Below, piece after piece: positions 751-61,700 of a stretch of 64,000 nt of DNA. The notes beneath the pieces were generated by a model. It had not been told where the DNA came from, did not search any database, and worked only from the letters and a program-made list of their open reading frames with translations. Within the stretch, counting starts at the first letter, position 1. Each line of letters begins with the position of its first letter. Made by a program: the position numbers and the translations under genes. Source of the stretch: Adineta vaga (lineage: Eukaryota > Animalia > Rotifera); NCBI GenBank assembly GCA_021613535.1, contig CP075492.1, forward strand, positions 17,856,001 to 17,920,000, read 5' to 3'.

Positions 751-772
751 ACCCACACCCACACCCTCAATA
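751..772 (-). repeat. Telomere-like tract (C arm) truncating the RING gene
   Basis: ACCCACACCCACACCCTCAATAT; the minus-strand ORF switches from ...LPIDRDI to EGVGVG. Confidence 0.85.
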
Positions 773-3700
773 TCGCGATCGATTGGTAATGAACTTATCT
801 GAGTAAGTCGAATTGTAGTTCCATCGTTCTTGGGACATACGAAATTGCCTATACCGCTTCGAGCGGCTCGATCTATGCATTTAAAACAGTATGTATGATT
901 ACAAAGTAATCGATGTGGATCAACAAATATATTGTGACATATTTCACACATATGATGCATTATAGCGTTTGCCGGGAAATTCCATGTATTTCAGATATCA
1001 ACTAATTTCCCGGAAATTGAGTTTTCCCTTCAGATATACTAAACCAAAAGAATATCTACAATTTCCCAATTTTCATTACGGACGTACAGGGCATATAGGG
1101 CATATAGGGCGTATTTGCCGCTTAAAATATGTAACTCTGTCTACTGAAGGGATATATCTCAGTGCGGGTGCGGGGTGGGTGTCGGTGGGATATATCTCAG
1201 TGAGGGTGCGGGGTGGGTGTCGGTGGGGATATATCTCAGTGAGAGTGCGGGGTGGGTGTCGGTGCCCTATATGCCTTACATGCCTTGAATATCTAAGGCA
1301 TCCAAGGTCTTTGACATCCTTAATTTCCTTAATATGTATGCTTCGAAATTATCATCTATCTGTATGCCAAATCTGGATTTCCCGGAAAACGCTATAACGC
1401 ATCAAACCTGTTTGTTACAATTTCTTCTACATTGGAATGAATTTTTATCTACTAATCCTGATATTTGTACATACTATTTCTAATTGAATGCATTGTGGTA
1501 ACAATGGAAGATATAACTTTCTCGTCAAAATTATATTCAGGTAAAACTTCATCTTGTTGTTGAAAACTTTCTTCACTGTTGTCGTCATCGGTACCGTCAT
1601 CATCATCTCCTCCTTCTTCTTCTTCACCTCCTCCTCCTACATCCTTCTCCTCTTTCTTTTCCTCCTCTTCTCCCTCCTTTTCTTGGTTTTCTTCAATAAT
1701 ATTGCTATCTAACAGAATTTTAACTCTACGAATTCGGTTGTTGGATGGAAGCTTAACGTTTCTTGTTGAACTGCAACTTGATGAAGACGACGAAGATGTT
1801 TTCCGATCACGATTAGAACATTTTCTATAATATGAAATGTATTTTTTTCTTTCAAAGCAATCTATTGCTTACTTCGAAGACGTATCATCACTTGATGAGT
1901 CTGATGAAACTAATTGATTTAACGAAGACATGGTCAAATTTTATTCCGATTCACTAAAAAGAAACATGGAGGCTAAGAATTAGAATTTTACAAGCAATAC
2001 CTGACTTGTCGTTTAACACGAGCAGATTGGATATCATCTGGATTTCGTCAAGCATGTTTTGGTGCAAGTTTGTCAATTCTTTGTGTATATAAACCTCGAT
2101 GTTGTCTACCATCTCTTTTCCAATTTTCTTGAACAACGACATTAGTTCCATCTGTATCATCTGTTACATCCAGTGACTTCTTTTTCTTTTGTTTTCTTCT
2201 TATTAAACTTTGTGTCACTCCAAATTTGCTTGCCTTAAATTGAGCTTGAATACTTCGATAAAGCTTTCTAATTGCATCACCCGGAGTATTACTGCGTTTA
2301 TTACCAAATATACTTTTTTTCATTGTACGAAAATAACTTTCAACCATAGCATTTGAATACCGAATAGGATTGTAAATTGCTGATAAATTTGCTTTATTGT
2401 CACTAGCATATCTTTCTTCAAAATTCCACAACAAACCAGTCCATAAAGGTAAATATGCCCACCATCGATAAAAGATACGTATAATTGAAGGAAAAAATAA
2501 TGGATTAACGATGTCATTATATTTTGATTTTTTATCAATAAGAGTTAGAAGATTTGGATACAAACGAATTGCTTCTTTATTGAACGGTGATTGATGTATA
2601 ATAGGAGTGTTATCACGAAAATATTCATCAACAACACGAAGCTCATTATCTCGTTTTTTTGCTTCTTTTAATATTTTTCTCTTATCTAATAATATTATAG
2701 CACTTTCTTCATCAATATCAAGTAGAACAGAGAGAATTCGTTCAAATTTCTGTTGTGCATTCATTTCATCTGGATCACCAAATATGCTAATTACTGTACC
2801 AAGTGTTTCATATAATCGATTAAGATCATTATCACATAAAATGAATACAAATATATGTAAGATACCTCGACGAATTTTCTTATCTATATGAGTGGCATTT
2901 AAACTTCTCGCGATAGCGTGTATTACATGACAATAACAAAGATGGATGAATGACAATGATCGTAATTCAGTAGCATTATATTTTCCAGATAAAACATTCC
3001 AACATCGATTTAAATGAATATTGATATTTTCGCCATTAAATACTTGAAGAATAGAGTTCATAAGTGCAGCCGAAAAATCAATGATAAAAAAGAAGGTAGA
3101 ACTAATTTATGTTTGATCTTGATAATGCTATTTGTTAAATTACCAAAAAAATAGCTAATGCTAGGAATTGTATGATCTGTAAGAATTGCGTGTGCAAGTG
3201 CAATAGTATCATTTGCATCGGTTCCATCTTTGAAAACCATGCCATAAATGTATACATCATTTTGTTCCTGCATTTTTATCAAGACACCACCAGTAGCATC
3301 AATATGAATGAAAGAATATTTTTCTTTTGTACAATATTTTATATATCTTTGAATTTGTAATTCAGAAAACAAATGTACACGAAATGGTAATTCACCAACA
3401 ACTTGAACATAACCTAGAAAAAGGCATAAAAGTTAGTTCATAAAATAATTTTTTTATATATCTATTAAACTTACCTTCAATTTCTTTAGATGTTACATCT
3501 GCTTCACGATATGAATAAACGATGATCCGACACTCTGTGAATACATTTTCATCAAACTCCATTTTCTTCCGATAATCAGCTCCTGCTTTTCTCGTTGATT
3601 CTAGTGTGTCACATCCTGTAAAATTTCCAGCTGCAAGTAAACGTTCATCTGCAGCTTCAACACGTTCTCGAAATACTGCTAAAGGTCCAATATTATTCGC

Positions 3701-7813: not shown

Positions 7814-7825
7814 AACATATTTTTG

Positions 7826-15150: not shown

Positions 15151-15362
15151 TATTAGTAGTTCTTGTAGTCATAAAAAATCATACTTTAATAGGGTTTAGT
15201 AGTAAGATTTCTTTATCAAATATGTGATTTAACGTGTTCTTGCTATTGAGACTATTTTCAGCATAAAAATCGATGTTCCATAAAGCATTTTGACCATAAT
15301 ATTACACATAAGATCTCCTATACATGGTTTGGGGACCTATATTGAGCGATTATCGAGCACTA

Positions 15363-15491
15363 AGGTGTGGGTGTGGGTGTGGGTGTGGCTGTGGCTGTGG
15401 GTGTAGATGTGTGTCGGTGTGAGGGCGGGAGGGTGTGACTGTATGTATTATACTTCTTTGTAATTAACACTCACACCCTCACCCACACCCT
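15363..15491. repeat. Paired telomere-like tract (G arm, spacer, C arm)
   Basis: (GGGTGT)n decaying into an AT-rich spacer, then CACTCACACCCTCACCCACACCCT. Confidence 0.9.
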
Positions 15492-15722
15492 TTTTTCTTT
15501 TAAAAATGTTCGCCATATACGATCTTTTCTACGACATCAACATCGGTATGAAATTAGATCAATGACAAAAAAAGATTTTCAATTACTTCGTTGTTTATTT
15601 GTTCATGATATTCTTTATATTATTATCAGTATCATTCCAAGTATATATACAGTGTATACAACTATTACAAAAAATCAACAACGAACGTTATTGGAACAAA
15701 CAATTCTTAATTTTCTCAATCG

Positions 15723-15788
15723 ATTTTGAGGGTGTAGATTGGTATGGGTATTAGTGTTATATCTATCTAATACTCACACCCACACCCT
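15723..15788. repeat. Paired telomere-like tract
   Basis: ATTTTGAGGGTGT...CTCACACCCACACCCT. Confidence 0.85.
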
Positions 15789-16479
15789 GTTGTGAGATGC
15801 ATCACATTCCACATAGTGGAGGTATAGAGAAAGCACATGAAAGAAAAATAAATATACATCTTGCTACGTGCCAGAATCAAAGTCAAGATAACATTTTTTG
15901 CAGTACGAAGAAATGTAATTTGACATTACACATAGAAATAGATAAAAAATATTCAATTGTTCGAATGACTTCGTTTTTGTTGGATAAAAGTTTTCAGAAA
16001 TACCTCTAAAAACCCTTAAAATCCATCGTAAACAAAAATCGTAAAATTTGACAAGAATTAACTTTCATGTATGGGCTGGGCCTTAACTCTCATAACTGAA
16101 TTCTGTGATTGAAATGTGCTGTTTCTATTCTAACAGAATACCAACATTATATCGATGTTAAAAATCTTTTGATTTGCACTTATAGTTATTTTTTACTTTT
16201 GACATGGTTTACAAATATAATTGAGATTAAAACATTTGCTTTCATGATTTTTTAGATCTCTTTTTGTAGACCAGATCTTCTTCATCTATTTGTGAAAATG
16301 ACATTTTCACTGACGCTTTCATCACAAAATTTATTCATACGTTATAAATTAATGCATTGACTATAATTCCTAATTGACATCTTCAAAACTTTTCTCTATC
16401 CATCCATTCATATAAAATTATTTTCACTTTGTTATTCATCTGTATATCATTTTTCTAACTTAGAAGCAAAACTCAGAAA

Positions 16480-17451
16480 ATGAATGTATCTCAAAATACA
16501 AATATTACTGAACAAGATGAAATAGAGAGTCCATTTACATTTATTTCCAAGAATATATCATTTATACTATTACTAACTTTTGTTATTCCATCTACTCTTA
16601 TGCATCTTATCGTATTTATTCTTACTTTTTTCAATAAAACTCTTCGTTCGGCACCAAACAATTATATTATTTTATTCTTTTATTCTATCCTCTTTTATGA
16701 CTCCAATAATATTAGATTCATATAGATCAAAACCAACTATTCGTTGGTCTATATGGCATTATGTAAAACTAGATCGTTTATTGAGACTGTATCTTTTTGT
16801 GCGATGAATCTTTTAGTTCCTTGGGCATCATTTGAACGACATCTTCTCATTTTTCATAGTAATATATTTAATCTAAAATGGAAAAATATTTGTTTTCATT
16901 ATATGCCACCGATTCTCATCAGCATTTATCAAATCATATTTTATATTTATTGCAGCTTTTTCTTTCCATGTGAAACTCAAGTGGATTTTGACAATAACAT
17001 ATGTTATTATGGTTGTCAGTCGAGAGATCCATTAATAGGTATGTGGCAAACAAGTTTTCATGGCATATTTCCACTGATATGTGTACTCATATGTAATGGT
17101 GCACTTTTGTTTCGAGTTTATCGATCAAAAACTCGTCTTCAACAATCAATCAATTGGCGAAAATATCGAACAATGATCTTTCAACTTGTTTCTATTGCAT
17201 TTCTCTATCTTTCACTTAATCTATCATTTTATATTGCCTATATATGGGTTATAACAGCTCCATCACCTATGGCAGTCATGCTCCTGCAACGAACTGGTTT
17301 TTTCACGTATTTTGTTCCGTTACTGTTTCCTTTCGCGTGTTTTCTTTCAATACCACAATTGGGATCGAAAATGAAGCAAATTCTATATCTTCGAATAACA
17401 CCTGTTAATCATGAAATGAAACGAAAAGCAATTCATCTTGCAAAGACTTAA
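16480..17451 (+). pseudogene. Rhodopsin-like orphan GPCR with two frameshifts near TM2 (pseudogene or assembly error)
   Basis: N-glycosylated N-terminus, LRSAPNNY, WASFERHLLIF (ERH variant of DRY), multiple hydrophobic segments; coding frame hops across three ORFs between about 16670 and 16750. Confidence 0.75.
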
Positions 17452-18667
17452 GTACAATAGAAAACACTTATGTAGAACAACAAAGCTAAATAATATTTTA
17501 TCATGTTTTTCAATGTATTCCGATATTTTTATCTGAATGTTGTAAATCCTAGTATAAACATATAAACTTACTGTTAATTGTGACAAAAATGGAAGAGAAT
17601 AAGGAATGATGTATCGTTATTGATATTGTATTTTATTTCTTGTCGTTTTTTTCACGTTATAATCGAAATAAACCTATAGATGAAAACAAGAATCTTTCTA
17701 TTACTTATTTTGTTAATCACCGTCTTATTGCTGATAGTGTATGAGTCATCCAATCTAAACGTTTTCATTCATTTTTTATCAATGATCCTTTTGGATTTTT
17801 TTTCGCTTCAAAAAATTCTTTCAAGAGACTTCACGTACATAATATCGTAGAGTTTGACGAATTCTAACACAATATATATATAAATTTGAAAGAAAATGCT
17901 TGAATTTTATTTTCAAAATAAATTACTTTATGTATGATTATAGAGATAGTTTCCTAAAATAATACTCTTTTCAAAGCATTTATAATAGTTGTTCTCGATA
18001 AGTAATAAATATAATCGAGATCAAATGATTGATAGTTTTCTACAACGCTCCGTGATTTCACATTTAAGTTAGTGCTTGTTAAAATTTTGAAAAATAAAAA
18101 TTTTTTTTTAACGCTACATTGAAATGGAAATTTATGCTTCACCCACACCCTGCCACAACACATCAGCAAGTGTTTGATTTTATTTCTGCTTTGCGCATAA
18201 ATTTTCTTCAAGCGTCATGAATTAATCCATCTCTTTTAATTTATAATTGATCCCTATTTTTAATTACTTTTATTTCGTCATTCTTTTATACAGCGGTGGT
18301 GCAAAGGAATCATAGAGCAGAGAAAAGCATTTCAAGAGTGTGAGTAAGGGTGAGAATCGTTTTTTTCTCTTGATTCGCAAATGAATGTCATTAAGAGTAG
18401 ACTTATCAACTAAACAATCAAGTAGATACAACCAAGAATGATTTCTTTTTATTTCAAATAAACACTTTTCATTCTTTTTTACAATCATCATCATTTAATC
18501 ATTAACGAAGTAACCGCCTTCTACTTGAATATATCTAAAAACAATACAATACCATCATTCACATTCGTGCTTGTAAAGAAAGATATTATCGTTGTATTTT
18601 CTAAGAGTAATACATTTCTTGATAGGCATTAGAAAAAAAGATAATGTTACTGAGACTAAGAATTCAT

Positions 18668-18733
18668 TCTTGAAGGTGGATGAGGCTGAAGGTGCAGGCA
18701 CAGTAAGATCGAATATCGCCCACACCCATACCC
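18668..18733. repeat. Paired telomere-like tract (degenerate)
   Basis: TCTTGAAGGTGGATGAGG...GCCCACACCCATACCC. Confidence 0.75.
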
Positions 18734-19274
18734 AGCATAAAATGGAATTGCAAAATATCGATAATCATTAATACATATTTCCGAATACAAGCATGATAAT
18801 GAAGATAAAAATACTGTTTCAAATATATAACAACCTAATTTAAAACCTTGTAATGGCTTAGTTGATGATTCGTCATACATTATTCCCGGCATTGTACAAG
18901 TTTGTTGAGTAGCACATGTACAACTTGTATTTTGGTCGGAATTTATATAAAAAACAGGTTCAATACGAAATGTAACATTTGTTATTTGATTTTCTTCGTT
19001 GATAAGAAATCTCCAATTAAATTGTATTTGACTAATTAATGCATTTCCTTGTAGATTTATACGAATTAAATTCAATGTTCGAGTAAATTCAATTGGGATT
19101 TTTTTTAATTGATTTAATATTTCATTTATTTCATTAAAAAATTGATAACGAGAAATGATTTCTTTCATGAATATAGAAGAACTATAAAATGTATTAATAC
19201 TATTTTCAATACTTTTGTCTGCTAATATACACAGTTGTTCCATAACTATGACAAAATTATCAAGTATATTTCGA
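18734..19274 (-). pseudogene. Internal fragment of the Cys-rich membrane module family, capped by tracts on both sides
   Basis: RNILDNF..MEQLC, SCTCATQQTC and GFKLGC...LSSLSCLYSEICI match the modules at 55556-63520; no start or stop of its own. Confidence 0.85.
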
Positions 19275-19340
19275 ATCTTGAGGGTGGGTGTGAATTGTGG
19301 TTGTTGGTGTTTATCATTAACCCACATCCACCCTCACCCT
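19275..19340. repeat. Paired telomere-like tract
   Basis: ATCTTGAGGGTGGGTGTG...CCCACATCCACCCTCACCCT. Confidence 0.9.
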
Positions 19341-19342
19341 TC

Positions 19343-20395
19343 TCATAGAAAATGTAAACGAAGTAGTAGTTGTTTTATACATCTTCCTGGTTGTGTCTCT
19401 CGATAAAATTCAGTCATATATACATTTGATGGATAGATAAATATCAATCAGGTAATTGCAGTTGGAACTGTCGTTAATTGTTTGACTAAAATCTTAAATA
19501 GATATTCAGTAACTGAGATTCCACAATACAAAAAAGGTTGTTTGTAACGATTAATTGGATACCAGATTTGATACGGAAGAATACAAAGAAGATAGATCAG
19601 TGGTGGAAGAAATATAAAGAAATGTCTTTTTAATAATGTTATATAGATTTTCTTTCTTGATTGTTGTACAGTAGTAAAATCAAATATACGTGAAACAAAA
19701 TTCTTTAGAACAATGATTGTTGATGTAATATAAATAATTCCTGCAAGAAAACCAACGATATATATCAAAGCAGATGTTAAACGAGATTTTAGTGTTCCAT
19801 GCGGTACACCCCATTGACATCGATAAATTAACATTAGAACACAACTTGGAACGATAAGACATAAACTGATCAATAAGATTTTTATTGATCTCCATCGACT
19901 GGCATTCATTCTAACTGTCGAACAGATGATTAAAGCACGTTCAAAAGCAATAAGTGCACTTAACCATAAACAAATAAAGGTTGCTACATGTTCGCCTACC
20001 TTCATTAGAAAACAATCAAGTGTTTCATCAACTTCGATATTATTATGTAAATTAGTCGGTTTCACATATTGTATTGAATAAGCAATGAAAAGTAATATTC
20101 TTCCAACTATAGAAATAAGTGAATAAATAATTAGATAAATACCAATATTCGTAGAACGTATCCGTTTGCTACGTATACATATTTTTAAGGTCAAACCATT
20201 GTTCAATAATGATAAAAATGTAAGAATTAAAGAAATGATGAAGTTATCACGGTTTAGATCGAATTGTACTTGTCGTTTTCTAGGAATTAATTCCAAACAA
20301 TTGACACCTTGATAACAAGGATTACATTGACAATAGGATTGATTTAAAATCTCATTCCATATCAATTGACCATTATTCGAACAGTTAATCAACAT
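19343..20395 (-). pseudogene. EGF-domain GPCR with in-frame TGA in TM7
   Basis: CSNNG...CQCNPCYQGVNC EGF, IAFERA motif; after TGA 19448-19450 the frame continues LIFIYPSNVYMTEFY to a stop at 19343. Confidence 0.75.
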
Positions 20396-20583
20396 TTTAC
20401 GTCGAAGGTCACTCAGTTTAACTTACTGTCACTAAGTTTTTTCAAATTTATGCGTCTTATCAGATATAAAAAAAGAAAAAAAGAAAGTGATAAGAATTTT
20501 TTTCTTTTTTTCCAACCTTACGACATAAACATCAATCCTACACATAAATGTTTTTCTTTTTTTCGGTTTTTATTTGTGAAAGA

Positions 20584-42728: not shown

Positions 42729-44474
42729 TTACAATAAAGGAAAATAATCATAATAGTCTTTCGAACCAACATTTGTTGTATAAGTAATTAATCGTTGAAC
42801 ATTTTTACAATTGCGTCGTGTTGTTTCTCGTGTAAAATCTTTTGTAATCATTCTTAATTTTTCATAATCAAGTCTTAATCGAGTCAAACATGGTAAACGT
42901 ATTCTAGTTTCATTTAGAAATTCTTCGACGTAATATATACTTACTCTTAAAATATCAAGAAAAGTTAGATGTGGATATTCAACTACTTCATATGGATGAA
43001 TAATATCATCAAATGCTACTATCATATTACATAACGATGGTATCGAATTGATGACACTGAGTTTTCGAAGTCTTGGAAAATTTTGACTTAGTCGCTGAAA
43101 AAACTCATGATCAAATGCAATTTCATCATATAGAAATAATTCCATAACATTCTTGTATAAAATATTTGGAAATATGTTACCAACGTATGTAAGATTATCA
43201 AATAGAAAGGGAAGTGTGAAAATATGGTTTATACTTGTATTATAAACCTTCTGGACAAAATTTGATATTTCTTGATCTTTTATGTTTTTTATATAATTTT
43301 CTTTAATATCATTCTTAGATAAATAATCAACTAAATCGGTTATGTTATTCCTTGTACCAAGATAAAAGTTAAAGGAATGAATTTGTGACATATGCATTAA
43401 AAACTGATTTATGAGATAAATTGGATTCATGAAATTAGTCTGGATGTCGATGCGTAAGTATAAAGTTAGCTTTTCCAAGTTTATCATACGACGAAAATGT
43501 AATACAATGTTATTATCATATTGTGTAATTTCATTATAACATATTAATGAAAAATATTTGAGTTTAAGTAAATAATCCTATAAAATATATTAATAGTTTA
43601 TCGAGAAATTTATTTCACCCAGATCAAATAAGATAAATATTTACTGAGTTATATACAAGTGACGAATCGATATCCATGGAATAAATTTCAACAATCAAAG
43701 TATGCAATTCTTTGAGTCGACCATCAAGTAAATGAAGAAGATCAGTAAACGTTTGCACATTAATGCGCAAGTAAGTAAGTGTTGAAGAAGAAAAGATATT
43801 GGATGGTAAATAATGAAGTGATAAGCCTGCATATGCTAAACCTATAGACGAAGTAAGACTCATGTGTTTTAACTTTTCACCCTCAACCAAAATTTGTGCA
43901 TATACTGTTTTTGTAATAGCTTTCGATGATCTTGGAACTGTCGCTTCATAGTTATAGATTAAATCAAGTTTTGTAATTTGTTGTTTTAAAATATGTCGAA
44001 ACGACAAATCATCTAAATAAAAAAACAATTATGAAACACTACATAATCTCCATGTTCATATTGTAATCATTTGACTAAAAGAGTTTAGAGAATACAATTA
44101 AACTCACTTATATAACAAGTTAATGTTTGATCATTTTGACGATGAACAATTGTCAATTCAGTTAAATTCGGATAATGGCTGGCAAAGAAAAGGCGTTCCA
44201 TATATTTCGGCTCAAGAATGAGACATTTGACATCTGAAGAAATTTGAGGTAATATATAATCACAGAACCGATCGAGTATTCCACAAATTATTGAAGTATT
44301 TTGCGTCATTGATGCAATATTAAGTACACTAGAAAATGATTCATATTGTATTATATTTTCTAATCGTTTGTTATTAACGCCAAGAAAGGAATAAAGAACA
44401 TCAGCATTACCAAGTTTCTTGAAAATATTTAATAATATTTCATCTGGCAAATCAAGAAGATCAATATGAAACAT
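42729..44474 (-). CDS. F-box-like / LRR-like protein (paralog of 9327-11010), 3 exons
   Basis: LLDLPDEILLNIFKKL; FSSSTL, HLLDGR, HIFTLPF, AFDHEFF, YFP. Confidence 0.8.
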
Positions 44475-45771: not shown

Positions 45772-45844
45772 ATCTTGAGGGTGGGTGTGAATATTAGTAT
45801 CTGTTTCTTATTTACATGAAAACCCACACCCACACCCTCACCCA
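45772..45844. repeat. Paired telomere-like tract
   Basis: ATCTTGAGGGTGGGTGTG...ACCCACACCCACACCCTCACCCA. Confidence 0.9.
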
Positions 45845-45867
45845 TCTCATAAAAATCATTTTGATTA

Positions 45868-48101: not shown

Positions 48102-48159
48102 ATCTTGAGGGTGTGCGTGTGAATCTATCTTCTTTATCCACACCTATACCCTCACCCAC
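48102..48159. repeat. Paired telomere-like tract
   Basis: ATCTTGAGGGTGTGCGTGTG...CCACACCTATACCCTCACCCAC. Confidence 0.9.
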
Positions 48160-48280
48160 TATCACGTAAATAGAGAACGACAATCTTACTTATATATTGA
48201 CATTATCGTGACACAGCACGTTGACTATTTATTGAAAAATACGAAATACGATATATGAAAGAGAAAAAAAAGCCAGAAAA

Positions 48281-49778
48281 TTAGACGAAATCTTGGCCCA
48301 GTTCAATTTCTTTTTCAGGTAAACCAGCGAGCAATTCTTCAGCATCTTTCTCTGTCATTTCCATGTATTCCTTTAGTGAAGGAAGTTTGTTCAAATAAGC
48401 TGTTGAATGATTTGATAAAACTTCATCTGATGGTTGAGTTTTATAATTCAACATCGATCGTGTACGTGGTGTCATAAAATCTTTCGATTTCAAAAACTTT
48501 GTCAATGTATTTCCTACATGAAAATAATATAGCTTTGAGATTTTAAATAATATAAAACTAGTTTTTACAAACCAATAATAAAACCACCTTTAGTTGGCAC
48601 TTGACCTACTCCACCTTTTCTTCCGATTGTAACAACCATGCCTGGATATTGACTAGACTGATATTGTTTAGGATAGGACTTTTTTCCTTCAATGATTCGA
48701 ATCAAAGACGCGACATATTCTGCTTGATTTCCAGCATAATAAGCCATTTTATCTTCCTTATTACTTATATCACCAACAGCAAAAATATTTGTATATCCTT
48801 CGACTTGTAAATGATTGTCGACTTTAAGTCGACCATTTTGAGGATCAATTTTATTTGCTAAATCACCTGTCATCAAACTTTTATTATTTACTCGTGCTCC
48901 AGTACAGATAAATGTTAAATCAGCTGTTAATGATTGTTTTTTATTCTGTGTAATAAAAGTTTTTCTACCAGAAATATAATTAACAGGCAATTTTGTATTG
49001 GAATCATTTGTCACGTTGATTCGATCATTGAATAAGATTTCAACACCGATTTGTTCGAGTTGCCGTCGAACATTATTATAAAATTCTTCTTTGAATACAT
49101 TCGGTTGAAACAAAGTAGAACCACTATGTACAAGAGTAATCTCCTTGTCGGGAAAGTCTGTCGCTATTTCACCACAAAGTTCTACACCAACAGGACCTCC
49201 GCCAATAACAAGAATTTGATGTGCTTGTTCGATTTGTTCTCGCATAAAACTGTAACGTGAAAGTGCTTGAGCACGTTGAACATCGGCTACTTTGCCTGGA
49301 AATGCATAAGAAGATCCAGTAGCAATAACTAAATAATCAAAATGAATAGGTTGATCATAACCGTGAACCATTACACCATTCGAAGAGATCGATATCACTT
49401 CAGCTTGTACAACACAACCTGAAAGATGAAATAGATTAAAAAGAGAAAGTATTTCTCTTTTCTGAATACGAACCATGAGTGAGTAGTCGATCATATGGAA
49501 TCATAATTTGATTTGCATAAGTTGGTTCTACACAAGCACGTAATGTGGCTAGATTGTGCAGAAAATATGATTTACGATCGATGAGTACTACAAAAAATTG
49601 TCCATTTTTATCGAGTAATTGAGCACATTTGACACCACCTAAGAGTAAATAAATATGTATCTTATATTCTGTTTTATATTGGCCTTTAGATGAATGGATT
49701 TTACTTACCATATCCACCTCCAATGATGAGTACTACAGGTTTCTTTCCTGAATTTTCTCGAGAACCGATTACTCCCAT
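48281..49778 (-). CDS. AIFM2: AIF-M2 / FSP1-like FAD-dependent NAD(P)H oxidoreductase, 4 exons
   Basis: MGVIGS start, VLIIGGGYG-G, DYLVIATGS, ILVIGGGPVGVELCGEI, NIFAVGD. Confidence 0.85.
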
Positions 49779-50105
49779 TGTTTGTATGAGTTACTTTACA
49801 TCATATCGTTCTAATTTTATATAGATGCGAGTTTTTGCCTTGTCATACGTTACATAGGCAATACATAAAGTACGTTCTTTTTCCTTTCACTCTAAGTAAA
49901 ACTGAACTGTTCTCTTTTCTTTATGACGATGCATATTTTTTGACGAGATCGCGTTGAAAGTATAATTTTTTGTATGACGATAGCAGAACGAAAAGAAAAG
50001 AAAATAAAAGAAACAACTGTCGTGCACTTTTTCCTCTTTTATTTGATTGGCATTGTAGTTATCGAGAAATGAAAAACGAGATTATTTTCATGTTATAACT
50101 TTCGT

Positions 50106-50151
50106 AGGGTATGGGTATTCTTCTTTACAAGCATATCGACACCCACACCCT
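50106..50151. repeat. Paired telomere-like tract (short)
   Basis: AGGGTATGGGT...ACACCCACACCCT. Confidence 0.8.
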
Positions 50152-50184
50152 TTAAAATAAAGTACATTAAGAATGAAGTATATT

Positions 50185-50865
50185 TCAGAATAACTGTACT
50201 GCAACTCTTTCATTAAGTGGAAAAGTAGGCCCAACGATGTCTCCATATGAAATGAATCCATTTTTTATATAATAATCACCATCGTAATCACCACAATATC
50301 CAATCCATTGTATAGAATTTAATTTATTTTCATTTATTAACCATTCATAAAATGCTTTACATTCATGATTTTCATAACCATCATAATGCCAGAACTCATC
50401 AAATACAATAATAGATTTTGGACCTAATAGTTTTCCTAAATAATCAAATACTGTTTTAGTTGAAGAATATATATCACAGTCGACATGTAATAATGCTATT
50501 TTAGCATTAATATGGTTATTGACAAAATCTGGTAATGTATCTTCAAACATTCCAGTTATGATCTTGATATTATCTTCAACCACGGGTATAGTTGACTGTT
50601 TATATGCACCTTTTTGCATTGGACGTGGTGACCAATCTTCTGGTAAACCCTGAAAGCTATCAAATCCATACACAATACGATTAGCATTAATATTTTTAGC
50701 TATATAATTTGTAGTCAAAGCTGATCCAACACCACATTCAATAATTAGACCATCAGATGATATTAATTTATTTTCTAATATGTATTGTAATGGTGAAAGT
50801 GCATTTGGTATTTTAGAAATACTTGATTTTAAATCTTGTAAAAATTTTTCATACGAGGATGACAT
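50185..50865 (-). CDS. TylF/MycF-type class I SAM-dependent O-methyltransferase, intronless
   Basis: IIECGVGSA, YGFDSFQGLPEDW, GMFEDTLP, LLHVDCDIYSST, IIVFDEF. Confidence 0.85.
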   Translation of the reverse strand: MSSSYEKFLQDLKSSISKIPNALSPLQYILENKLISSDGLIIECGVGSALTTNYIAKNINANRIVYGFDSFQGLPEDWSPRPMQKGAYKQSTIPVVEDNIKIITGMFEDTLPDFVNNHINAKIALLHVDCDIYSSTKTVFDYLGKLLGPKSIIVFDEFWHYDGYENHECKAFYEWLINENKLNSIQWIGYCGDYDGDYYIKNGFISYGDIVGPTFPLNERVAVQLF

Positions 50866-51114
50866 TATAAAATATATAAGATATGTGTAGTTGTATATGT
50901 GCGTAGTTTTACCTTTACTCTATTTATATATCACTTTACCGCACTATAACATTGTCTCTTTATTCTTCTTCATTGTTCTTCTTTTTCTTTCTCTTCTTCT
51001 GCGCTCTTTTATCTAATACTGCACTCATTGTGATATGAACACGATTAGAGTAGTGAAGTAACTTAATAAATATTAATACCGATTTTATTACACTTTAGCT
51101 TATTCCTTCGCTCC

Positions 51115-52106
51115 CTATTTTTCTATCTCGAAGATGTAGATGTGTAGATGGGGGGGGGGGTCTAAATACAATAGTTTCGATGAAGGGTACCTCGAATATT
51201 TGTAAATTGATCTATGTCGGCAGATAGTGAACGACACAGACCACGAGATATTAGGTTCAATGTGCCTTGTATGTTTTAGTTCCTCAGTATTCTCAATTTT
51301 TCCAATAAGTCCGCTTTTTTTATTGTTGTCTATAGACGTACGAAAAATAACGAGTGCCGCCATTTTTTTTTCTATGGATATATCTGCGTCCTCTGCCGCA
51401 AAACATCACGAAAATATTTAGATTTGTATTTAAAAAAAAAGACTTTTTCTTATTTTGACACGAAATGTTTTTATTGATTACAATGACCTTGTTTAAATAC
51501 AATAGTTTGATATGAATATTAGTTCAGACTCGAGAAAATTAGAAGTACGAAGAAAGAACCATTTGATTTGTTTAAACTTTCGCTTTATCTCGTTTAGTAG
51601 TCTCATTAACCTTTTGAATGGCTTTGTCAATAACTTTATCGACGACCTTTTCAATAGTTTTGTACAGAGCTTTGTGAATGACAGACCGTTGCATTGAAGA
51701 TATGTCGGGTGTTTTGGCATCGATTTTCGGTTGAACTTGTTGATTAACTTCATCGATTATTTCTTGTGTTTCATTTTTTTCAGGATAATCTGCATATGAG
51801 AGATTCTCATAAGATGCAGGTGATACTCGGCGCATCCCTTCAACAATACGTTTTTGCTCTGCCTAAATAATACCAAATCATTTCATTTTATTTGGAAACT
51901 TTTTTGACAGATACGCTGAAATCGAAACATGTATTATTCAATAAAGAATGAATTTAGTTTTTAAAGTATCGATTTTAAGTTATATTCAAAGGACTTAGCT
52001 GATAGTCTTTTATAATATGCTTGATCGATTCATTGGCGACTTCTTCGATTTCCTCGGTGTCGGATGGATCGATCGGTGAAGCCCCATTACAAAGGTTTGC
52101 TCCCAT
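51115..52106 (-). pseudogene. Small multi-exon protein with MG...C N-terminus, apparently disrupted
   Basis: MGANLCNGASPIDPSDTEEIEEV... with an early stop; helical exon 51572-51860; short introns. Confidence 0.35.
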
Positions 52107-52420
52107 ATATATGTTTTCAGTAGAAATATAAAAGAAATTGAGACGTCAAATACGTAAATGAATGTGTGAAATGAAGGATGTGAAAGACTTAAATAACAAT
52201 TTTTCCGAGACTATTTGCTTACGTAGTATCTGTGGGATTTTTTTCTTCTTCTATTTGTATATCAATATTTGTTCGGAAGTGTCCCCCACATAGAGTCTTG
52301 TATTAGTTAACGGTGAATGATCGAAGGAATTCTTCCGGGAGGAAAATGAAAGTAAATATTCGTGTACTTTTCTTAGTTTTTTTCCAACTACGCTTAGCAT
52401 ACAATGACTTCAAATGAGAG

Positions 52421-52511
52421 TGTAGGTGATGATTTGGTGTGGATAATGATGTAGTACCCCTTCCCCTTTGGATTACCCACACCCACACCCTCACACGTAC
52501 ACGCACACCCG
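52421..52511. repeat. Telomere-like tract (weak G arm, C arm)
   Basis: TGTAGGTG..GGTGTGG...ACCCACACCCACACCCTCACACGTACACGCACACCC. Confidence 0.8.
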
Positions 52512-52738
52512 CTTTACTTCGAACCGACCTTTCTTGAGACAGAGGAAAAATACGATAACAGAAATCTAGATGACAGCTTTTCACTTTTAACATTTTTCAA
52601 AGATGGCTTTCATTCTCGGCATTGCTTTAGAAAACGTAAAATGTCAAGCATTTAGTAAGCGGAGAAGTTGCAAAACAAAATTTAGAGGAAAAATTGTATG
52701 TAGGTGAATGTTCTTGTCTGCTTAATATTCGTGGCGTA

Positions 52739-55700
52739 TCATTCACATTTACTTAAAGCCAGATCCTCCGTTCCAATACGAGCTTTACTGAGGAATATGT
52801 CTTGAAAACCGTCACCGTTAAAGTCACCGAATGCGGCTGATGCTGCCATATAATACTCGTCGGATGAAAATGCTGTTTGTGTTTGAAAATTGCCCTCTCC
52901 ATCTCCAGCTAAGAAATTCATTTTGGGCATAATGTTGTCAAAACCGATGTCTAAATAACGATCGCCATTGAAATCGCCGACGAATATCTGCATGTCTAGC
53001 GTATCATTTCTTAATTGCAGTCTCTTGCTGTCACCTACCGTCCCATTACCATATCCAAACAGCACTTTAATGAAACTTTGACGACGAAAGGTCACAACGA
53101 TATCTAGAAAAGTGTCACGGTTGAAATCACCGATACCAAAATGGTACGGATCGTAACGACCGCCACTAAAAGATGTTTGTTGCTCTTTAAAAGTACCATT
53201 GCCATGATTAAGCCATATACCAATATTTCGACCATATATATTAATGACAACGATATCTTGATGTCCATCACAATTGAAGTCAGCAACAGCAACACCTCCT
53301 GGACCGCTATGAACCCCTGTATAAAGCTTCGTCGGTTTTAAAAAACTTCCGTCGCCGTTTCCAAAGAACACATTAACAGTATTGTCACCAGCATTTATAG
53401 TAATGATATCTAAATATTTGTCAGCATTGAGTTCACCGACAGCTATTGTTATCAATCCATAATAATAACTGTTAGCGTTGAATACAGCTGTCTCTCTAAA
53501 ACGTCCGTGACCGTTTCCGAGTAGAATGTGCACAGTACCTAGTGTAAAGCTAGTAACCGCAACATCAAGTTTATTGTCGTTGTTAAAATTGCCTATAGCT
53601 ATACTGCTCACGTCGGGAGAATAAATTGATGAAGACATCAATGCTCTAAAAGTTCCGATACCACTGCCGAGTAACACATGCATATAGTGAACGTCAGGAA
53701 AGGCCACATCGAGCCAACCATCACCGTCAAAATCAGCAACAGCGCGTACGATTGCGGAACTTACAGAAGCAGGTGGTCTTTCCACAGGTATTATTTGGTA
53801 TTTTAATGAGCAAGTCGGTTCTAATGAGAAGAAAAAAGGATCTATCTCAAGTCCCCAAGAAAAAATATAACGGAGAAGTAAGAAATCAGACCATTTGTTC
53901 TCTTGATGGTGGGCGGGAGTAAATATCAGACTGAGAGCGCAAGAGGTATTACACGAAACTATTATTGACATATATATTGAACATTAGTATTCTTGTATCC
54001 GGAGAACTTTAGAGAAGGAGCAGGATTTTAGGATATAGAAACCTTTCATAATTTATTTATATAATTAACGTGGCAGATGAAACAATGAGAAGGATCTCAA
54101 TCTACTCACTTTGGGTAGTCCTGGTTGTTCTGATCATACTTGCTGATGAACTAGTAATGACATTGGTTATTGTATCTGTTGATGCATCCGTAGTAGCAGT
54201 TGTTGTTGTTGAATAAGCTAATCAAGATATATGTGTTAAATAATACAAAAAAGACATGCATCAACAGAGTTACCGTACCTACTAGGTGTGTACTGAGTCC
54301 GAATGGGATTCGACGATTCGGATACATCTCTTGTAGCAAAACTCATTATGTATATAGGTATCCGACGTGTGTAGCCTTGTCTTGGTTAAGTATTTTCAAG
54401 GGCGAAAGAAGAATAGGTAGTAGTGTATTCAGTGTAAAGCAGCGCACTCTTTTCCAAAATGAAAAAACTTCAATAGATCAGTGAAGCAAGCATAAAGACC
54501 TAGTGCATACTCTAACTCGATCACCACTTACAGCAATTTTCTGAGAACTGTCGTAAGCGATAATTGAATTAGGACTAGGTACTATATAAAAGAACGATTA
54601 TCATTCATAAACAGTCGTTTTTGTATAAATCTTAGATACTGTCAAGGAAAATCATTTATTCATATGTTAGTTGTTTTTTCTTCATGTTTATTTCATTTGT
54701 CAAATCAAAGATTTCGGTGATTGATTCTATGGCATTCTTTTTCATTATGTATTATTTGAAAACATTTTGAAGATTTATCTCTTCCTCGTCAGTGTATGTA
54801 CATTTAGATTTACTTTGACATCTTGAAATGGAAGATGCACATGTGTGTTTCCCCTTCAGTATTACCGTCCTGCCATTCCACTTTACTATTAGAGGGAGAA
54901 GGAAAAGAGAAAAGAGATGTGCATGCATGCATGTATGTAATATATTCAGGATGCACACGTAAAGCTAACTGGAAATGAACTGACAATGGAGATACAAATC
55001 TGCGAGACATTTTTGCATAATACATAATACATAAAAATGTCATTGAGTTGGTGTGATTGTAACATTTGCTTTTGCGAATAAAATAAACACACAAAGAAAG
55101 AAACATCTAGTTTACGCATGAGCCCTTCCCGACCCAAACTGTATTGTTCATGATTTACTGTTAAGTCTTACACATTGTAGCGATCTGTTGAAAAATGTAT
55201 CACTATTTAGTAAACTGAACAAACTGATGTTCTCCTATCATATTTTACTATGCACACTAGGTTTAAACCGAATCCGAACGGCCGACGCGGCTTGATTTTT
55301 AAATGGACTAGTTTCATTTTTTAGTTGACAAATACAAATTCCAACCGAGATTCAAATTCGGTGCATACCTAATAATTTGCATTCGTAGAGAACTTGTCCT
55401 CAAGTTCCCGTCTAGTTCAATATTAAACTGATTTTATACTTTGGATTCTATGAAACTAATAAAAAAAAATTAGAGCGAATGCTAATGGATACAACATTCG
55501 ATGTCGAAAGCGGATCTTTAGGATTAGAGAAAATATTGCAGAAAAAGCTTCATACCTCTTGACAAAATTTGATTCTTATTTTGTCGAATAATATTGATAA
55601 AAACGGTGATAAGTGGTGCTGTCATACATAGGAACAGTGCACATATGAAGATAATTTTCCACGCATATCGAGTTGATAAGACGGAATTGGCCCTAAAAGA

Positions 55701-58700
55701 AGATTTTGAATATGATGTACAAATGACTGTTGAAAGATCATACTGAGATGTGATATTCATGGATGGTAGTACAGCGTTTGAACTTGGATTGATAATATCT
55801 CTGATGATATTTTCAATGGGTACTGTTTGAATAAAACTAATAGGTTGGACAATATTTCTTCGTTTCTTTCGGTATTGATAGATTTTGTTTATAATTCGAA
55901 TCATTTTGGGGCAAATCCATTTAAGAACAGTAGCGAGACCACCTTGCAGACCAAGTAGAACAATCGTTGTATGGAATATATTGTACTGAGGACGATAAGT
56001 ATACGAACATATGTAAGGTAAGCATTGCTCAAAATAGGATGAATAATTAATGATAGGTATCCATTGTTCAACGAATAGATCATTGATAAGTTCGTTAATA
56101 GTTGTCCGAATTGAGAATCGGCTCTTTGCTGTCGAAAGAGAATGCCAAGAGTGTGTAAGATTCATTGAGCTTGTATAGTGTTGAATCTGATGAATGCATG
56201 CTTGATCATAGAAACATTCAAGAGTCGAAGCAAGAAATGATTCGCTTGGTGTACAACCCATTTTTAAACCTTTGAGTGGAATTGTTTTAGGAGATTTTGT
56301 CTCAATAAAATTTGCTTGAATAGTACAATTCGCAAATAATCCGCATGAGCAGTCATCATCATAGCGGAAAGCTTCGGTAGGTGCATAAGTCATAGATAAA
56401 CTTTGCCAAGGAATAACATATTCGTAATTTGTTCCATAAGTAGATATAAAAGCATTTCCATGATTGATATTTCGAATTAAAAACAGAAGACGAGCAAATG
56501 TTTTTGGAGCGTCTGATTTATTGTGCTCGATTATCATATGAACATATTCACGAAAATCGCTTTCGGATAATAGCTCATTAGTAATAAGCAATGAAGACAG
56601 AAATCGTTGAATAGAGATATTTATGGTATTGTTGGAAAGTTCACATAAACCAGTAAGAAATTGTAAATGTGCAGTGAGAAAACGACGATAGTCTTTTTGT
56701 ACATAAGCAGAAAGATTGGAAACAAGATTACTCGTAAGAGTAATTAGACCTTCTTTTGAAGCGAACGGACTGGAACAGATCTTGAAATTTAAAAAGAATA
56801 TTTTATGAAAGCAAGAAGTAGGCATGAGCGTACTGAGATCTGAGCGAATGAGGCGCAGTGACTACTCGTTACGAAATTTCCTATTATCACGGCGTTCCTG
56901 TTGTCTTTAGGTTTTGCCTTGAAAATAATGAAGGAATCACATATGTCTAGGATATGCTGTCTGAAATAAGAAGTCTTGTGCAATATAACTACTCATACAG
57001 TAAATCTTTTATTCTCCATATTCTCTTTTGAAAACCTACTTAAGTCGCATCAGTTCTTAGATGAGATTCATTTATAATTTTTTTTTCTTTTTCTTCTTAC
57101 CTCATGAAACGTTACTTTTAGTTTGATAGATTGATTGTATGTTGTTGCTATCGATGAACATGAACATTTCAATTCATTGTGATATTGTTCAAAAAGGTGA
57201 TTGTAGAAATTGAAAGACGGTCTCTCGAAGGTTTTTGTAAACGCTTCAGGTAGAAAAATATTATGAATGCCCAGAGCAGCAAGACTTATAATAAATAACG
57301 TCACATAGAGACGCGTAGCCCATTGGCCAAGACGTTTAGCTTGCATCCGATCAATATCACTGCCAAAATCTCGTACAAAGAACATATTGAAGTTCGTCAG
57401 ATTTGTGTATAAAAATGTGATTAGTTTCTTCATGTGCACTTGCAATTGCATAAATCCCCTGAGCGAAACTATAGAGAAAAATATGAATAGTATATTTTAT
57501 TTTTTTTATCGGATAGACAATCTGAACAGGGTGTGGGTGTGGGTAAAAGCATAGGCGGCGGAAGCGGGAGGTGGGAGGGCTGAAGCACCCAACTTTGATA
57601 AAATGGACGAAACACCTTTTTCCTCAGCAGAATCTTACGAGATAACAATATGAGCCTGTAGTGTTTGAAAGATCCTATGTGGCACCTAAAACAACGCTTT
57701 ATTGATTCGAGTGGTTTTGTGGAAAACTGTAAGCTGTCTGAAATGTCTTTGCATCGAAAGCTATGCTTTTACATTCAAGATATAGAAAAGGCGCTAGAAA
57801 GCACTTGAATAAGTAGTTTTTCATCGGCAAGTATTAGCGTCAGAAAGCCGTACTTGTATTTTTTTCCTTGAGAAAGTACAGAAAGTGAAAGTATTTATAT
57901 TTTTGTTCCACCTATTTTCTAGAGATTTGATCTACGATTACCTCTTTGTTGCCACTGTTGCTGTTCCTGCTCGTTTTTATTGCGAATTCTTCTCCATAAA
58001 TAAAAGGTAAATTTAACCAGTTGAGGTGCAATTATTCTCAATGAGAGAACAAGACCACCAAACAAGGACAGCAATGTTATCATCATTTCGGCAATAGTTT
58101 TCCTCCTCATTCTTTCAAGATAACTGCAATGGGTTGGTGCGCATGAATTATAAAACCGATCATACGAATAAGATGGATTCCATTTTTCTATCATCATTTT
58201 TTCAATTATTGTTCCAATAGATGTGTTGGGGGGAAAACCAGTCAGTGTTGGATCATAAATAAGAGAACGAACGTCGAACCATTGTGGATACTCGACATTA
58301 TACAAATATGCTGTTTTACTATAATTCATCAAAATTGGTAAACAATCGGAATTCGAATAATAGCATTCAAGTGTCGAACTGAGTAGCGAATCTGTAGTCG
58401 AGCATCCTGCAATTAAGCCTGGTACCGTATAGCGCTTCACATATGTTGGATGAGAATGTAAGGTTTGTTCAGCATCATATATATTAATGGGCTGTTTACA
58501 ATTGGAATTAGTAGCACAAGTACAGTTCGAAGATATCGATTCGACATCGCGTGGTCCGGTCAGCCGAAATTTTACCTGTGAATGAAGGTTTATATTTTGA
58601 TCATCAGTCTTGTACGTGTCATATGCGAAATACATATTGTGATCAAGAGAAGAAAAAAAGATCAATTAGAATATTTAGTCCTAATTCGATCCCTAATTTT

Positions 58701-61700
58701 AGTAGTGTCCAAAAAAACGGCTCAAACATTTGTTCAGTGACGTCCAGTGCAACTGATTATCTTCTCCGAAACAAAGCAATCGACGGTACACATTTTGACC
58801 GATTTGTTTCTGGAATGATAACTTTTCTTCGATGAGTGGTTATCGTTAAAAGAATTCGAAGTTTCCACCCGTTTCTCTTCTGAGCGTACTCAGTTGATGA
58901 TCATACTAGTCGTTTTTTGTCTTAATTCCTTCAACTGTAAGGAGGGTTATATAAAAAAATAGTTTCGACATAGCACAAGACCGAAACATGCAGTTATTGT
59001 TATGGTATACATATGGGCACAACAGTAAGTCAGTGACTCCATTTTCATGTGAGTTCTCGGAATGAAGAAGATAAAAATGACTCGTTGATATTTTAGGCCA
59101 AGAAAGAAAAGTGACAAATCTGACTGTTTCTGTTAGTATCCAAGATAACATACGCATAGTATTTTGGGTATATATCATTCCTGTATGCATCACAATCTTC
59201 TCAGCTTTGAGATATTAATGAGACGGCTTCTATAATTTTTGGAAAGCCTTATATAGTATGTATAAACAGAAATTCATGGAAAAGTGCTGAACGTCTCATA
59301 GAGGTTGAAATCGGTTTCAGTACTTGAACTTCTATTTTTCAAAAATATTTAGCATTTCACGTTATTCGATTATACAACATGAAATTTGTTTTCCGAAGTT
59401 ATGACTTTTCGAACACATTTCAATTGAATGTTTTAGAAAAAGACGGATGTAGACTTATAAATATTAGCCAAACTTCTCAAATTCAGTTTGTTTTTGATAA
59501 ATGAAAGTCTTTACTAAAATAGACCACTGAATAATAAAGGCAACTTCACACCCCGAACACCTTTATGAATAAAAAAAGTAAGTGCATAAGATTCATAGTG
59601 GAATTTTCGACGAATTCGTTATTATCTGTATCCTATGTCTGTCTTTAAAACTGTAAATAATCGATCGCCTTTAAATGTCAAAAATTGTCGATATACCGAT
59701 ACTTGCACATACATACTTTCTAACTGATAGAATTCACACGATTTGTATTCATTTAAACTAAATATTATCAACTGTAGATAAAAATACCTGTGACATTATG
59801 ACATTGTTGCTTGTATTCATTATGAATGTTCCAAGTGGATTATCATTTTCAATCAATGGCTTATCACTTCCAATTGGTCCAAAATAAGGCTGATCGATTT
59901 GAGTTAGAATTTGCTCTGTTTTGATAAGACTTCCAAAATAATCTGTTGTTGATTGAAAAAATTGATTAAGAGTTGCATTTAACTGTTTATTGAAATTGAA
60001 TTCAGCCATTATATTTGAAGTTATAAAAGGTTGTAAAAGGAAACGATGAACAGTATCATCAATCGTTGCATTGGCCAACTTACAATAATCAGATAATAAC
60101 TGAAACTGTGAAGAGGCTATATTACGCCAATCAGGAGATTTTAATACCGTTTTGATTTGTTTCAGTAGCAAAATCCATCGATTCGTGACAAAATCACTCG
60201 AACATACTTGATGTAAAATAGGAGATAATGACATGAACGTTTTATAAGATATTATCTTGTTAGAACATGGACATTTGAGTGTTTTGACATGCTTGATTTG
60301 TAATTCATTATAAATAGATAACGACGGATACGGTTCACTTTTTTTTATCATCTCAATACTCCACGAAGTGTAGGCAAAAAAAAGTAAAAGTGAGCCTAGA
60401 AGTACAAAGGAAACCCTGAAAGATGTAGACAATGAGAAATTTAAAACATTAGTTTTTCCATCGTTCCCCAAACAAAAATGGCTTGTATTTAAATGATCAG
60501 TATTTTATTGTGAATGATCAGTATTTTTTTCATCAAATGATCAGTATTTTTTGATCAGTAAAAATATGTTTTTTGATCAGTAAATTATTCGAAATACCAG
60601 TAAACATATCAAAATATGATCAGTATATTATTTAATTCTGATCAGTAGATATATATTTTTCGATCGGCAATTTAATCATTTGATCAGTAATTTATTCATT
60701 TGATCAGTAATTTATTCATTTGATCAGTAATTTATTCATTTGATCAGTAAAATAATTAAGATATCAGTATAAAATCTTCTTTGTTCAGTAAATTATAGTA
60801 TTTTTACCAGTATTCGTCTTTCTATAACATCCCTCGATCCTCGCATAGATCTTGAGGATGTGTAGGTGTTGGTGTGGGCAAGAGTGAGATTATTGTATCA
60901 ATTAATTACTGACACCCTCAACCTCGCCTTCACTGATCCACACCTACACACATCCATCCCTCACCCTCATCCCCGCACCCTCACCCTCACCCACACCCAC
61001 CCTCACACCCTCACCCTCACAGATGTAATATCTGGAAAGTAGGTGAACATATATGTAATACTCGAGGGATGCTATAGAAAGACGAATACTGGTAAAAATA
61101 CCATTATTTACTGAACAAACCAAATTTTATACTGATATTTTAATTATTATACTGATCAAGTGAATAAAGTACTGGTCAGATGAATAAGTTACTGATCAAA
61201 TGAATAGATTACTGATCAAATGAATAAGCTACTGATCAAATTATTAAATTACTTATCAAACGAATAAGATACTGATCATTTGCATTTAATACTGATCAAA
61301 TTTTACTGATCATTCATAATAAAATACTGATCATTTAATTTGTAGCCAACAAAAATTAGAGCAAATTTAGAGAAACTCGTTTTTCTCAAAAAATGCCGCG
61401 CTGTATCGATGCAAAACTTTCCATTCATTCTTTTTTCAGCAATACTGATAGAATACAGCTAGGCAAGCCGTACAATCGATCGGAACTGCAACACTCGCTG
61501 AACAGTGCCGCTTCGCATGGCGATGCGTCTCGTTTCGATACATCGGTTTTCTACTTAAATCTGATGTAAAGAGGCGGCATTATAAATATACATAGATGGG
61601 AATATGTGTGCAACAGAACGACCATAGTCACACTCTATTTTAACCCTTGTAGTACCAGCCGTTTTTAGGACTTGACTGCAATTGTTCTTCTAATTCAAAT

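Follow-up and report, generated by a model that had tools for sequence, protein, structure and literature searches.

Head-to-head mini-telomere units in a subtelomeric region of Adineta vaga: probable scars of broken DNA ends that were capped and joined

Bdelloid rotifers survive massive DNA breakage, have the largest share of foreign genes among animals and carry fast-changing subtelomeres. The scars described here bear on how broken or incoming DNA is physically joined in these animals, as a sequence-level readout of one route. They lie in a stretch of 64,000 nucleotides of the bdelloid Adineta vaga (contig 3, positions 17,856,001-17,920,000 of 20,354,754 bp), hereafter the window, whose own positions are counted from its first letter. 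Short telomeric tracts (TGTGGG and the variant TGAGGG) are organised there into units, in which a tract of G-strand repeats (the G arm), a spacer and a tract of C-strand repeats (the C arm) follow each other on one strand. The arms were called with a 12-mer matcher over 264 kb (the window and 100 kb on each side), which gave 126 arms; the detailed work covers these 264 kb and about 34 kb of other loci. The scars show, by comparison with unbroken paralogs, where the ends lay, that a short leader and G-strand repeats were written onto them, and that unrelated fragments and cassettes were joined. In our judgement, the units are probably the traces of a cap-and-join process, by which broken ends were healed with a short new telomere and then joined head to head via a templated bridge. 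They suggest how A. vaga reshuffles and perhaps acquires genes.

Several described systems resemble the units in part. Human 2q13 is the relic of a head-to-head telomere fusion, and the units share with such relics a G-strand array followed by a C-strand array on one strand. Fusion relics, however, are single whole-chromosome events with long degenerate arrays and subtelomeric flanks, unlike the thousands of short-armed junctions (about 9-110 nt) found here, which have arbitrary gene-fragment flanks and an apparently templated spacer. Telomere-bearing elements are also known from the germ line of ciliates (TBE1 of Oxytricha and Tel-1 of Tetrahymena), and in the cassettes between our units, too, C-strand repeats mark the left border and G-strand repeats the right one, as would be the case in an integrated linear telomere-capped molecule. 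TBE1 and Tel-1 form families of transposons that have target duplications and a conserved interior with a transposase, whereas the interiors here are arbitrary genes or gene fragments. Chromosome healing, that is the formation of a new telomere at a break, occurs in ciliates, nematodes, yeast and human terminal deletions. As in healing, non-telomeric 3' ends that offered little or no homology directly received G-strand repeats here, and one sequence was healed in two of its copies at points 300 bp from each other (window positions 23820 and 24124); but in contrast to the stable chromosome end produced by healing, the added telomere has 1.5 to about 18 repeats, is internal and is fused to another new telomere. 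In A. vaga itself, healing has been proposed for chromosome fragments, and telomeric repeats at deletion break points of A. vaga lines were reported in 2026 (PMC13564844).

In primates and rodents, telomerase inserts short interstitial telomeric sequences at double-strand breaks (Nergadze et al. 2007, PMC2246262), and in rodents nucleotides located 3' of the telomerase-RNA template are copied along with the first repeat during break repair (PMC2246262). The units resemble the mammalian insertions in that telomeric hexamers appear in one step relative to the unbroken sequence, with microhomology at the break ends, and resemble the rodent loci in that a few nucleotides 3' of the template would be copied with the first repeat and that template-RNA-derived sequence may adjoin the repeats (PMC2246262). 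In contrast, the mammalian insertions consist of one tract in one orientation within a contiguous locus and occupy far fewer loci, whereas here we find two opposed tracts, a spacer structured in families, unrelated flanks, a leader of 7-9 nt and, by rough extrapolation, some 1,200 full-leader junctions genome-wide (from the genome-wide leader count given below) and on the order of 10,000 arms (from the 264 kb). The Athena and Terminon elements of bdelloids share with the units an association with telomeric repeats, the same genome regions, repeats on truncated ends and the capture of host genes, and Athena carries ACACCC or TCACCC tags that pair with G overhangs (PMC6431247, PMC8557442, PMC3846280). 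Athena arrays, however, run head to tail with repeats in the same orientation and have a hammerhead motif and a reverse transcriptase (RT) open reading frame (ORF), none of which we see at our units. It is already known that bdelloid subtelomeres contain short telomeric stretches, which are enriched near transposons and foreign genes; in the literature searched, neither the head-to-head units nor the leader, spacer families and long overlaps presented below turned up, and an earlier account of them may exist.

The tracts are far too frequent in the window to be due to chance, since GGGTGTGGGTGT (at most one mismatch) occurs 35 times there against 0.03 expected from shuffled sequence. An earlier note on this DNA, made from the letters alone, had listed 20 such sites; the tracts are real but not all 20 sites are units, as about 14 consist of G arm, spacer and C arm (the clear cases start at 15362, 19279, 24124, 39143, 40869, 40986, 45776, 48106 and 60849), another four have one arm only, and the list also includes a 9-nt stub and an unrelated minisatellite (1149-1264). 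The order of the arms is strongly biased. Between neighbouring arms at most 150 nt apart in the 264 kb, the G arm precedes the C arm in 39 pairs and follows it in 5, and these five pairs are the two sides of mini-cassettes of 5-149 bp located between adjacent units. At the scale of the genome, the exact pattern of G arm, 5-120 nt and C arm gives 771 matches per strand, against 15 matches at about seven places for the opposite order. The head-to-head order thus prevails both locally and genome-wide, and the statement of the earlier note that the reverse is never seen was too strong. In each cassette the left border is a C arm and the right border a G arm, and the two flanks of a unit are unrelated. 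In agreement with the earlier note, no short direct repeats or target duplications flank the 39 units, nor do any of these show a simple rejoining with overlap; rare duplications of about 400 bp do occur around cassette insertions.

Comparison of broken with unbroken copies locates the ends precisely. The sequence at 16801-23820 of the window recurs in inverted orientation about 310 kb upstream (contig 3:17541899-17550409), with 98.3% identity. This second copy must be an uncollapsed haplotype or the product of a recent inverted segmental duplication; its left limit was not reached. At 23814-23820 (+ strand) the unbroken window copy reads a native TCTTGA, and it is exactly here that the inverted copy switches to an arm: beyond 23820 the window copy runs on as ordinary sequence, whereas in the inverted copy GGG-type repeats, then an 18-nt spacer and a C arm, lead into unrelated DNA. 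A cut is also found in the window copy, 300 bp downstream of this point (24124), so that the sequence was broken at a different place in each of its two copies. Self-comparison of all the retrieved sequence gave seven such pairs of broken and unbroken paralogs, in which homology stops exactly at an arm. In six of the seven, the addition begins at varying points of one string, ATCTTGA followed by GGGTGT, and the added DNA is in register with the last bases of the target. Thus a target ending in TT received GAGGG, one ending in ATC received TTGAGGG, those ending in GA, TCTTGA and A each received GGG, and one ending in TGG received GTGTGGG. Microhomology between target end and leader amounts to 1-6 nt in these six pairs; in the seventh pair, whose identity is no higher than 89%, the junction is not clear-cut. 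Since the unbroken partners read otherwise at these positions, the GA and TTGA were synthesised and not inherited from the target. In none of the seven comparisons does the interrupted sequence resume directly after the unit; in four it does so only after a cassette block of 3.9 kb or 24.7 kb.

The same leader precedes arms well beyond these pairs. Within the 264 kb, 54 of 124 arms are preceded by at least 2 nt of a suffix of ATCTTGA (6.7 expected) and 12 of 124 by all 7 nt (0.01 expected). The left and right arms of units have the same distribution of leader matches, and the leader is equally enriched at both outer edges. Genome-wide, CACCCTCAAGAT has 874 occurrences, chromosome cores included, against 0-1 in the control, a count that uses a pattern whose end letters pass about 72% of sites. 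Among the 100 places listed, 46 have G next to the leader and 18 have GG (hand count), against about 16 and 2.5 expected from base composition, and the leader therefore fades out over about 9 nt, as CCATCTTGA. The template implied by these junctions would read approximately 5'-(ACACCC)n-UCAAGAUGG-3', and the synthesis is templated and primed by a microhomology of 0-6 nt. Such a template would also explain the TGAGGG variant and its typical place, which is outermost and hence first made. The proposal of the earlier note, in which a templated polymerase extends broken 3' ends with the G strand and two such ends are then joined, thus gains direct sequence support from the paralog break points and from leader-templated addition at both outer edges; its description of the spacers as unique does not hold.

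The spacers are indeed neither unique nor always different between copies. The 16-mer TTAAGAGYATAGYCTG, taken from the spacer at 40869, has 123 copies in the genome against 0-2 in the control; it is found on five of the six contigs, with none on contig 2 among the matches listed. All 27 copies listed have a G arm on one side of it and a C arm on the other, with near-constant junction registers at both and subfamily variants that reach into the first bases of the C arm. The arm lengths differ in every one of these 27 copies, and their flanks differ as well, except in one segmental-duplicate pair. Further recurrent families begin with TAGATAGATGTA, GAAGAAGATATA and TCTGAAT, and many spacers have no relative within the 264 kb sampled. 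Whole units can also be related: the unit at 24124 is 85% identical, spacer included, to a unit of contig 4 with different flanks, and that at 19279 is 76% identical to the unit at 45776. Recurrent families of up to about 120 copies with constant registers imply that the joining step, too, is templated or copied. Since the registers are constant on the inside and the arms vary on the outside, the spacer and the few arm bases next to it on either side are probably copied from a template, either an RNA or an existing unit, while the outer arms would be made afresh in each event.

We therefore favour a mechanism in three steps. The first is the one read from the junctions themselves: a free DNA 3' end pairs through 0-6 nt with the template 5'-(ACACCC)n-UCAAGAUGG-3', and its extension writes part of the leader (CC)ATCTTGA and then GGGTGT repeats, forming a new telomere of 1.5 to about 18 repeats. 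In a second step, a second and unrelated end would be capped likewise, whether it is the other side of the break, a cassette-sized free fragment or a distal piece of chromosome. In a third step, suggested by the constant registers and the spacer families, an RNA or an existing unit would serve as template for lengthening one of the G tails through a short spacer and on into C-strand repeats, and the new C-rich tail would anneal to the other G tail, leaving a G arm, a spacer and a C arm. This would be a simple means of uniting two G tails, which are unable to pair with one another. Repeated over evolutionary time, this could build a mosaic of cassettes of 0.05-15 kb, in each of which a C arm forms the left border and a G arm the right border. 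For the first step the most economical candidate is telomerase, which we favour for arm synthesis; another RT or the copying of existing units would also fit. Both telomerase-type repeats and endonuclease-deficient Athena elements are recorded in A. vaga (PMC6431247, PMC8557442). The sole match of the assembly to the telomerase RNA-binding (TERT) domain is at contig 2:6094386-6094754 (83.5 bits). This match has one TAA inside, possibly an intron. If telomerase is the enzyme, the leader would be the telomerase-RNA sequence located just 3' of the template, as in the interstitial telomeric repeats of rodents, and the scars would spell the template region of the telomerase RNA, approximately 5'-CCCACACCCUCAAGAUGG-3'. 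The leader is in this respect a falsifiable prediction, and the junctions provide a signature by which new events could easily be sought in lines exposed to irradiation or desiccation.

The genes and cassettes next to the units show what has been joined. About 2.4 Mb separate the window from the right end of its contig, and it belongs to a broad subtelomeric domain of the chromosome-level assembly described in PMC8494291 (six contigs, 100.8 Mb, 31% G+C), in which TGTGGG tracts are concentrated toward the contig ends. Its ORFs match a TylF-type methyltransferase, a pyridine-nucleotide oxidoreductase, FG-GAP, NHL, an ADP-ribosyltransferase and a retrotransposon gag, which is the mix reported for bdelloid subtelomeres. 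Several genes are cut by arms. The central part of a paralog on contig 1 aligns at 77% with a 0.54-kb piece (fragment 18768-19259); this paralog is uninterrupted and has no telomeric tract at either end of the homology, and the sequence beyond the unit at 19279 comes from another gene family. For gag, the match breaks off at profile position 78 of 97, at the start of the arm at 40869, and Kelch, ADP-ribosyltransferase and RING frames run directly into arms at 39273, 30688, 770 and 24216. In all these tested cases, the earlier observation that the cut gene does not resume on the other side has been confirmed.

Two cassette insertions have the same layout, in which a sequence X ends in a target O, followed by a unit, the inserted block, a second unit and a second copy of O that leads into sequence Y. 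The duplicated target measures 419 bp (99.8% identical) around a 3.9-kb insertion and 401 bp (98.3% identical) around a 24.7-kb one; a directed search for further overlap pairs turned up only these two. All four junctions of the 3.9-kb insertion carry arms, so that both chromosome ends and both cassette ends were extended before joining, and the right-hand copy of its 419-bp target runs on into the rest of the chromosome arm. The 401-bp overlap itself contains an older unit; the events are therefore nested in time. Overlaps of about 400 bp may represent either filled-in staggered nicks or ends from two different chromosome copies. The cassette of the 3.9-kb insertion, itself 3.8 kb long (contig 3:17758811-17762632), contains an ORF of 315 aa, RING-IBR-RING-like (RBR-type), and adjoins a carboxylesterase-like gene; as to its source, no close copy is present elsewhere in the assembly, which holds only family members at 65-72%. 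In the window, three consecutive cassettes (48161-57526) each bear an ORF with a Pfam match: a pyridine-nucleotide oxidoreductase at 48.2-50.1 kb, a TylF-type methyltransferase at 50.2-52.4 kb and FG-GAP at 52.5-57.5 kb, the last together with a second ORF that lacks such a match. This arrangement would fit a cassette-wise acquisition of genes, their foreign origin being putative. The ORFs next to units are host-type genes. As a tentative and wider proposal, which we see as possible but less likely than not, A. vaga might cap any free DNA end, its own or foreign, with a mini-telomere made of leader plus TGTGGG and stitch the capped fragments together via templated bridges. If true, this capping and stitching would be the main builder of the cassette-like, foreign-gene-rich subtelomeres and a physical route of foreign-gene integration.

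Several points weigh against the cap-and-join mechanism or limit its reach. The detailed comparisons comprise seven paralog pairs and 264 kb only. About 40% of the called arms have no clear partner, and not every junction is head to head. At least 4-5 spacer families are found, which a single telomerase RNA cannot explain, and the leader of 7-9 nt lies outside the repeat unit and is longer than the few nucleotides copied in rodents. We did not find the template RNA, for which only a listing of the leader 12-mer was made and any genuine locus would be swamped by the scars; to call the leader a telomerase RNA sequence is thus our inference, and templating by RNA would look the same as templating by DNA in these sequences. 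Finally, all the events seen are old and fixed in the laboratory lineage, and current activity is not evident, because contigs of four sequencing runs contain no joint that skips a unit, which is a weak negative since the runs probably represent one laboratory lineage.

The alternative that survives best is that units are tiny non-autonomous retroposons. A whole existing unit, with the leader at either end, would be transcribed and reverse-transcribed, for example by the RT of Athena, onto one broken end, and the new 3' end would join any second end by microhomology, so that only one end is healed. Such a single patch would account well for spacer families of more than 100 copies with constant registers on both sides, and for whole units that are 76-95% identical at unlinked loci with different flanks. 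Moreover, the transcript of a unit ends in ACACCC repeats whichever direction it is read, and this is the tag that endonuclease-deficient Penelope-like elements use to attach to G overhangs (PMC6431247, PMC8557442). However, simple inheritance of the arms is contradicted by the 27 copies listed for one family, every one of which differs in arm lengths and repeat variants, and the sequence resumed right after the unit in none of the seven comparisons, although a patch on a two-ended break should often rejoin its two sides. Nor was a hammerhead ribozyme or another RNA family matched in the window, where an Rfam scan with E up to 1 gave only two weak matches at chance level. We consider this explanation unlikely as it stands; it may shade into the cap-and-join mechanism but fits poorly with the differences in arms from copy to copy.

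Stepwise growth of chromosome ends, in the manner of Terminons, seems to us a good deal less probable. Under this model, a terminal deletion would be healed, DNA or cDNA would be added repeatedly, and the tracts would be former chromosome ends. The region is subtelomeric, and short telomeric stretches, 5'-truncated Athena copies capped by repeats and captured host genes have all been described in bdelloid subtelomeres (PMC6431247). Growth of this kind nevertheless predicts G tracts in the same orientation, whereas a C arm follows the G arm at nearly every site, and the motif also occurs in chromosome cores. The continuation of the right-hand copy of the 419-bp target into the chromosome arm, too, calls for joining and not for terminal synthesis.

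A foldback or MITE-like (miniature inverted-repeat transposable element) DNA transposon moving by cut and paste, with telomere-like terminal inverted repeats, would be in keeping with the inverted arms, the recurrent internal sequences and the hundreds of copies dispersed on all contigs. This candidate was rejected and appears hardly tenable, as it is contradicted by termini that are not fixed, since the leader starts at variable points in register with the last bases of the target, by arms that vary from about 9 to 110 nt, by the lack of target duplication and by flanks that are not contiguous in any unbroken paralog. An assembly or sequencing artefact at low-complexity repeats, which the earlier note had thought worth checking, can practically be dismissed: some short-read contigs do end inside arms (repeats skipped at 39138-39184 and 40864-40907), but independently assembled contigs from runs of three studies bridge the units 39143-39273 and 40986-41047 with zero differences, so that the tracts are not a product of the present assembly, and the same units are kept in the 98.3% identical duplicate.

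Besides the sites that carry this argument, the window contains the following tracts. At its left end, a minus-strand RING-finger reading frame runs into a single C arm (749-770) whose outer edge reads TCAAT. The minisatellite at 1149-1264, which is not a G arm/C arm unit, has three copies of a 38/39-nt repeat with a degenerate telomere-like core; a 24-nt inverted repeat (1087-1110 and 1264-1287) frames it. Two units follow, at 15362-15492 (G arm 15362-15404, 62-nt spacer, C arm 15467-15492) and at 15727-15789 (a short G arm and a TAGATAGATGTA-family spacer, with the C arm at 15772-15789), and then a single C arm at 18137-18152. The 0.54-kb gene-fragment cassette (18740-19270) has at its left edge a C arm with a doubtful G arm (18716-18734) and at its right edge the unit 19279-19341 (G arm, spacer and C arm), with ATCT just before the G arm. 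A 9-nt G stub without partner arm is present at 21763-21771. The units at 24124-24216 (G arm, 53-nt spacer, C arm) and 28091-28138 (degenerate G arm, spacer, C arm 28119-28138) are both followed by TCAAGAT, and the single C arm at 30665-30688 is followed by TCAAGATG, the C-terminal piece of the ADP-ribosyltransferase beginning directly after it.

Further right, the unit at 39143-39273 consists of a G arm, a 28-nt spacer and a long C arm, and cuts minus-strand Kelch repeats at 39273. In the unit at 40869-40938, a G arm cutting gag is followed by the spacer of the 123-copy family, which is the reverse complement of TTAAGAGTATAGCCTGA, and by a degenerate C arm ending in TCAAGAT; a cassette of about 50 nt separates it from the unit at 40986-41047 (short G arm, spacer, short C arm). 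Across 39600-40700, contigs of all four sequencing runs carry a second version of the gag region, 2-7% divergent and at 2-4 times the depth, and other copies of this long terminal repeat (LTR) element therefore exist in the genome. A weak single C arm lies at 43877-43889. The units at 45776-45845, related to the one at 19279, and 48106-48160 each show ATCT, G arm, spacer and C arm. Those at 50106-50152 (C arm 50137-50152) and 52421-52510 (C arm 52473-52510) have a degenerate G arm and a spacer, and a single G arm stands at 57527-57546. The last unit (60849-61021), with ATCTTGA just before it, comprises a degenerate G arm, a 33-nt spacer and a 110-nt C arm rich in the CCCTCA variant. Tandem arrays of a 20-nt TGATCAGTAATTTATTCATT-type repeat flank it in opposite orientations (60490-60770 and 61150-61301).

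Other repeats were noted beside these tracts. A block at 32-38 kb of the window has a higher G+C content (0.35-0.39), an NHL-repeat ORF and a CAA-rich 18-75-nt tandem array at 35423-35751. The same block contains perfect 19-nt self-complementary words, present twice and 118 nt apart, and short hairpins of the CCGC type (32845-33000, 34215-34250 and 36269-36457). Outside the window, a roughly 141-nt tandem array extends over about 2.6 kb (contig 3:18011977-18014570) and has a 64% identical inverted relative at 17766230-17767576.

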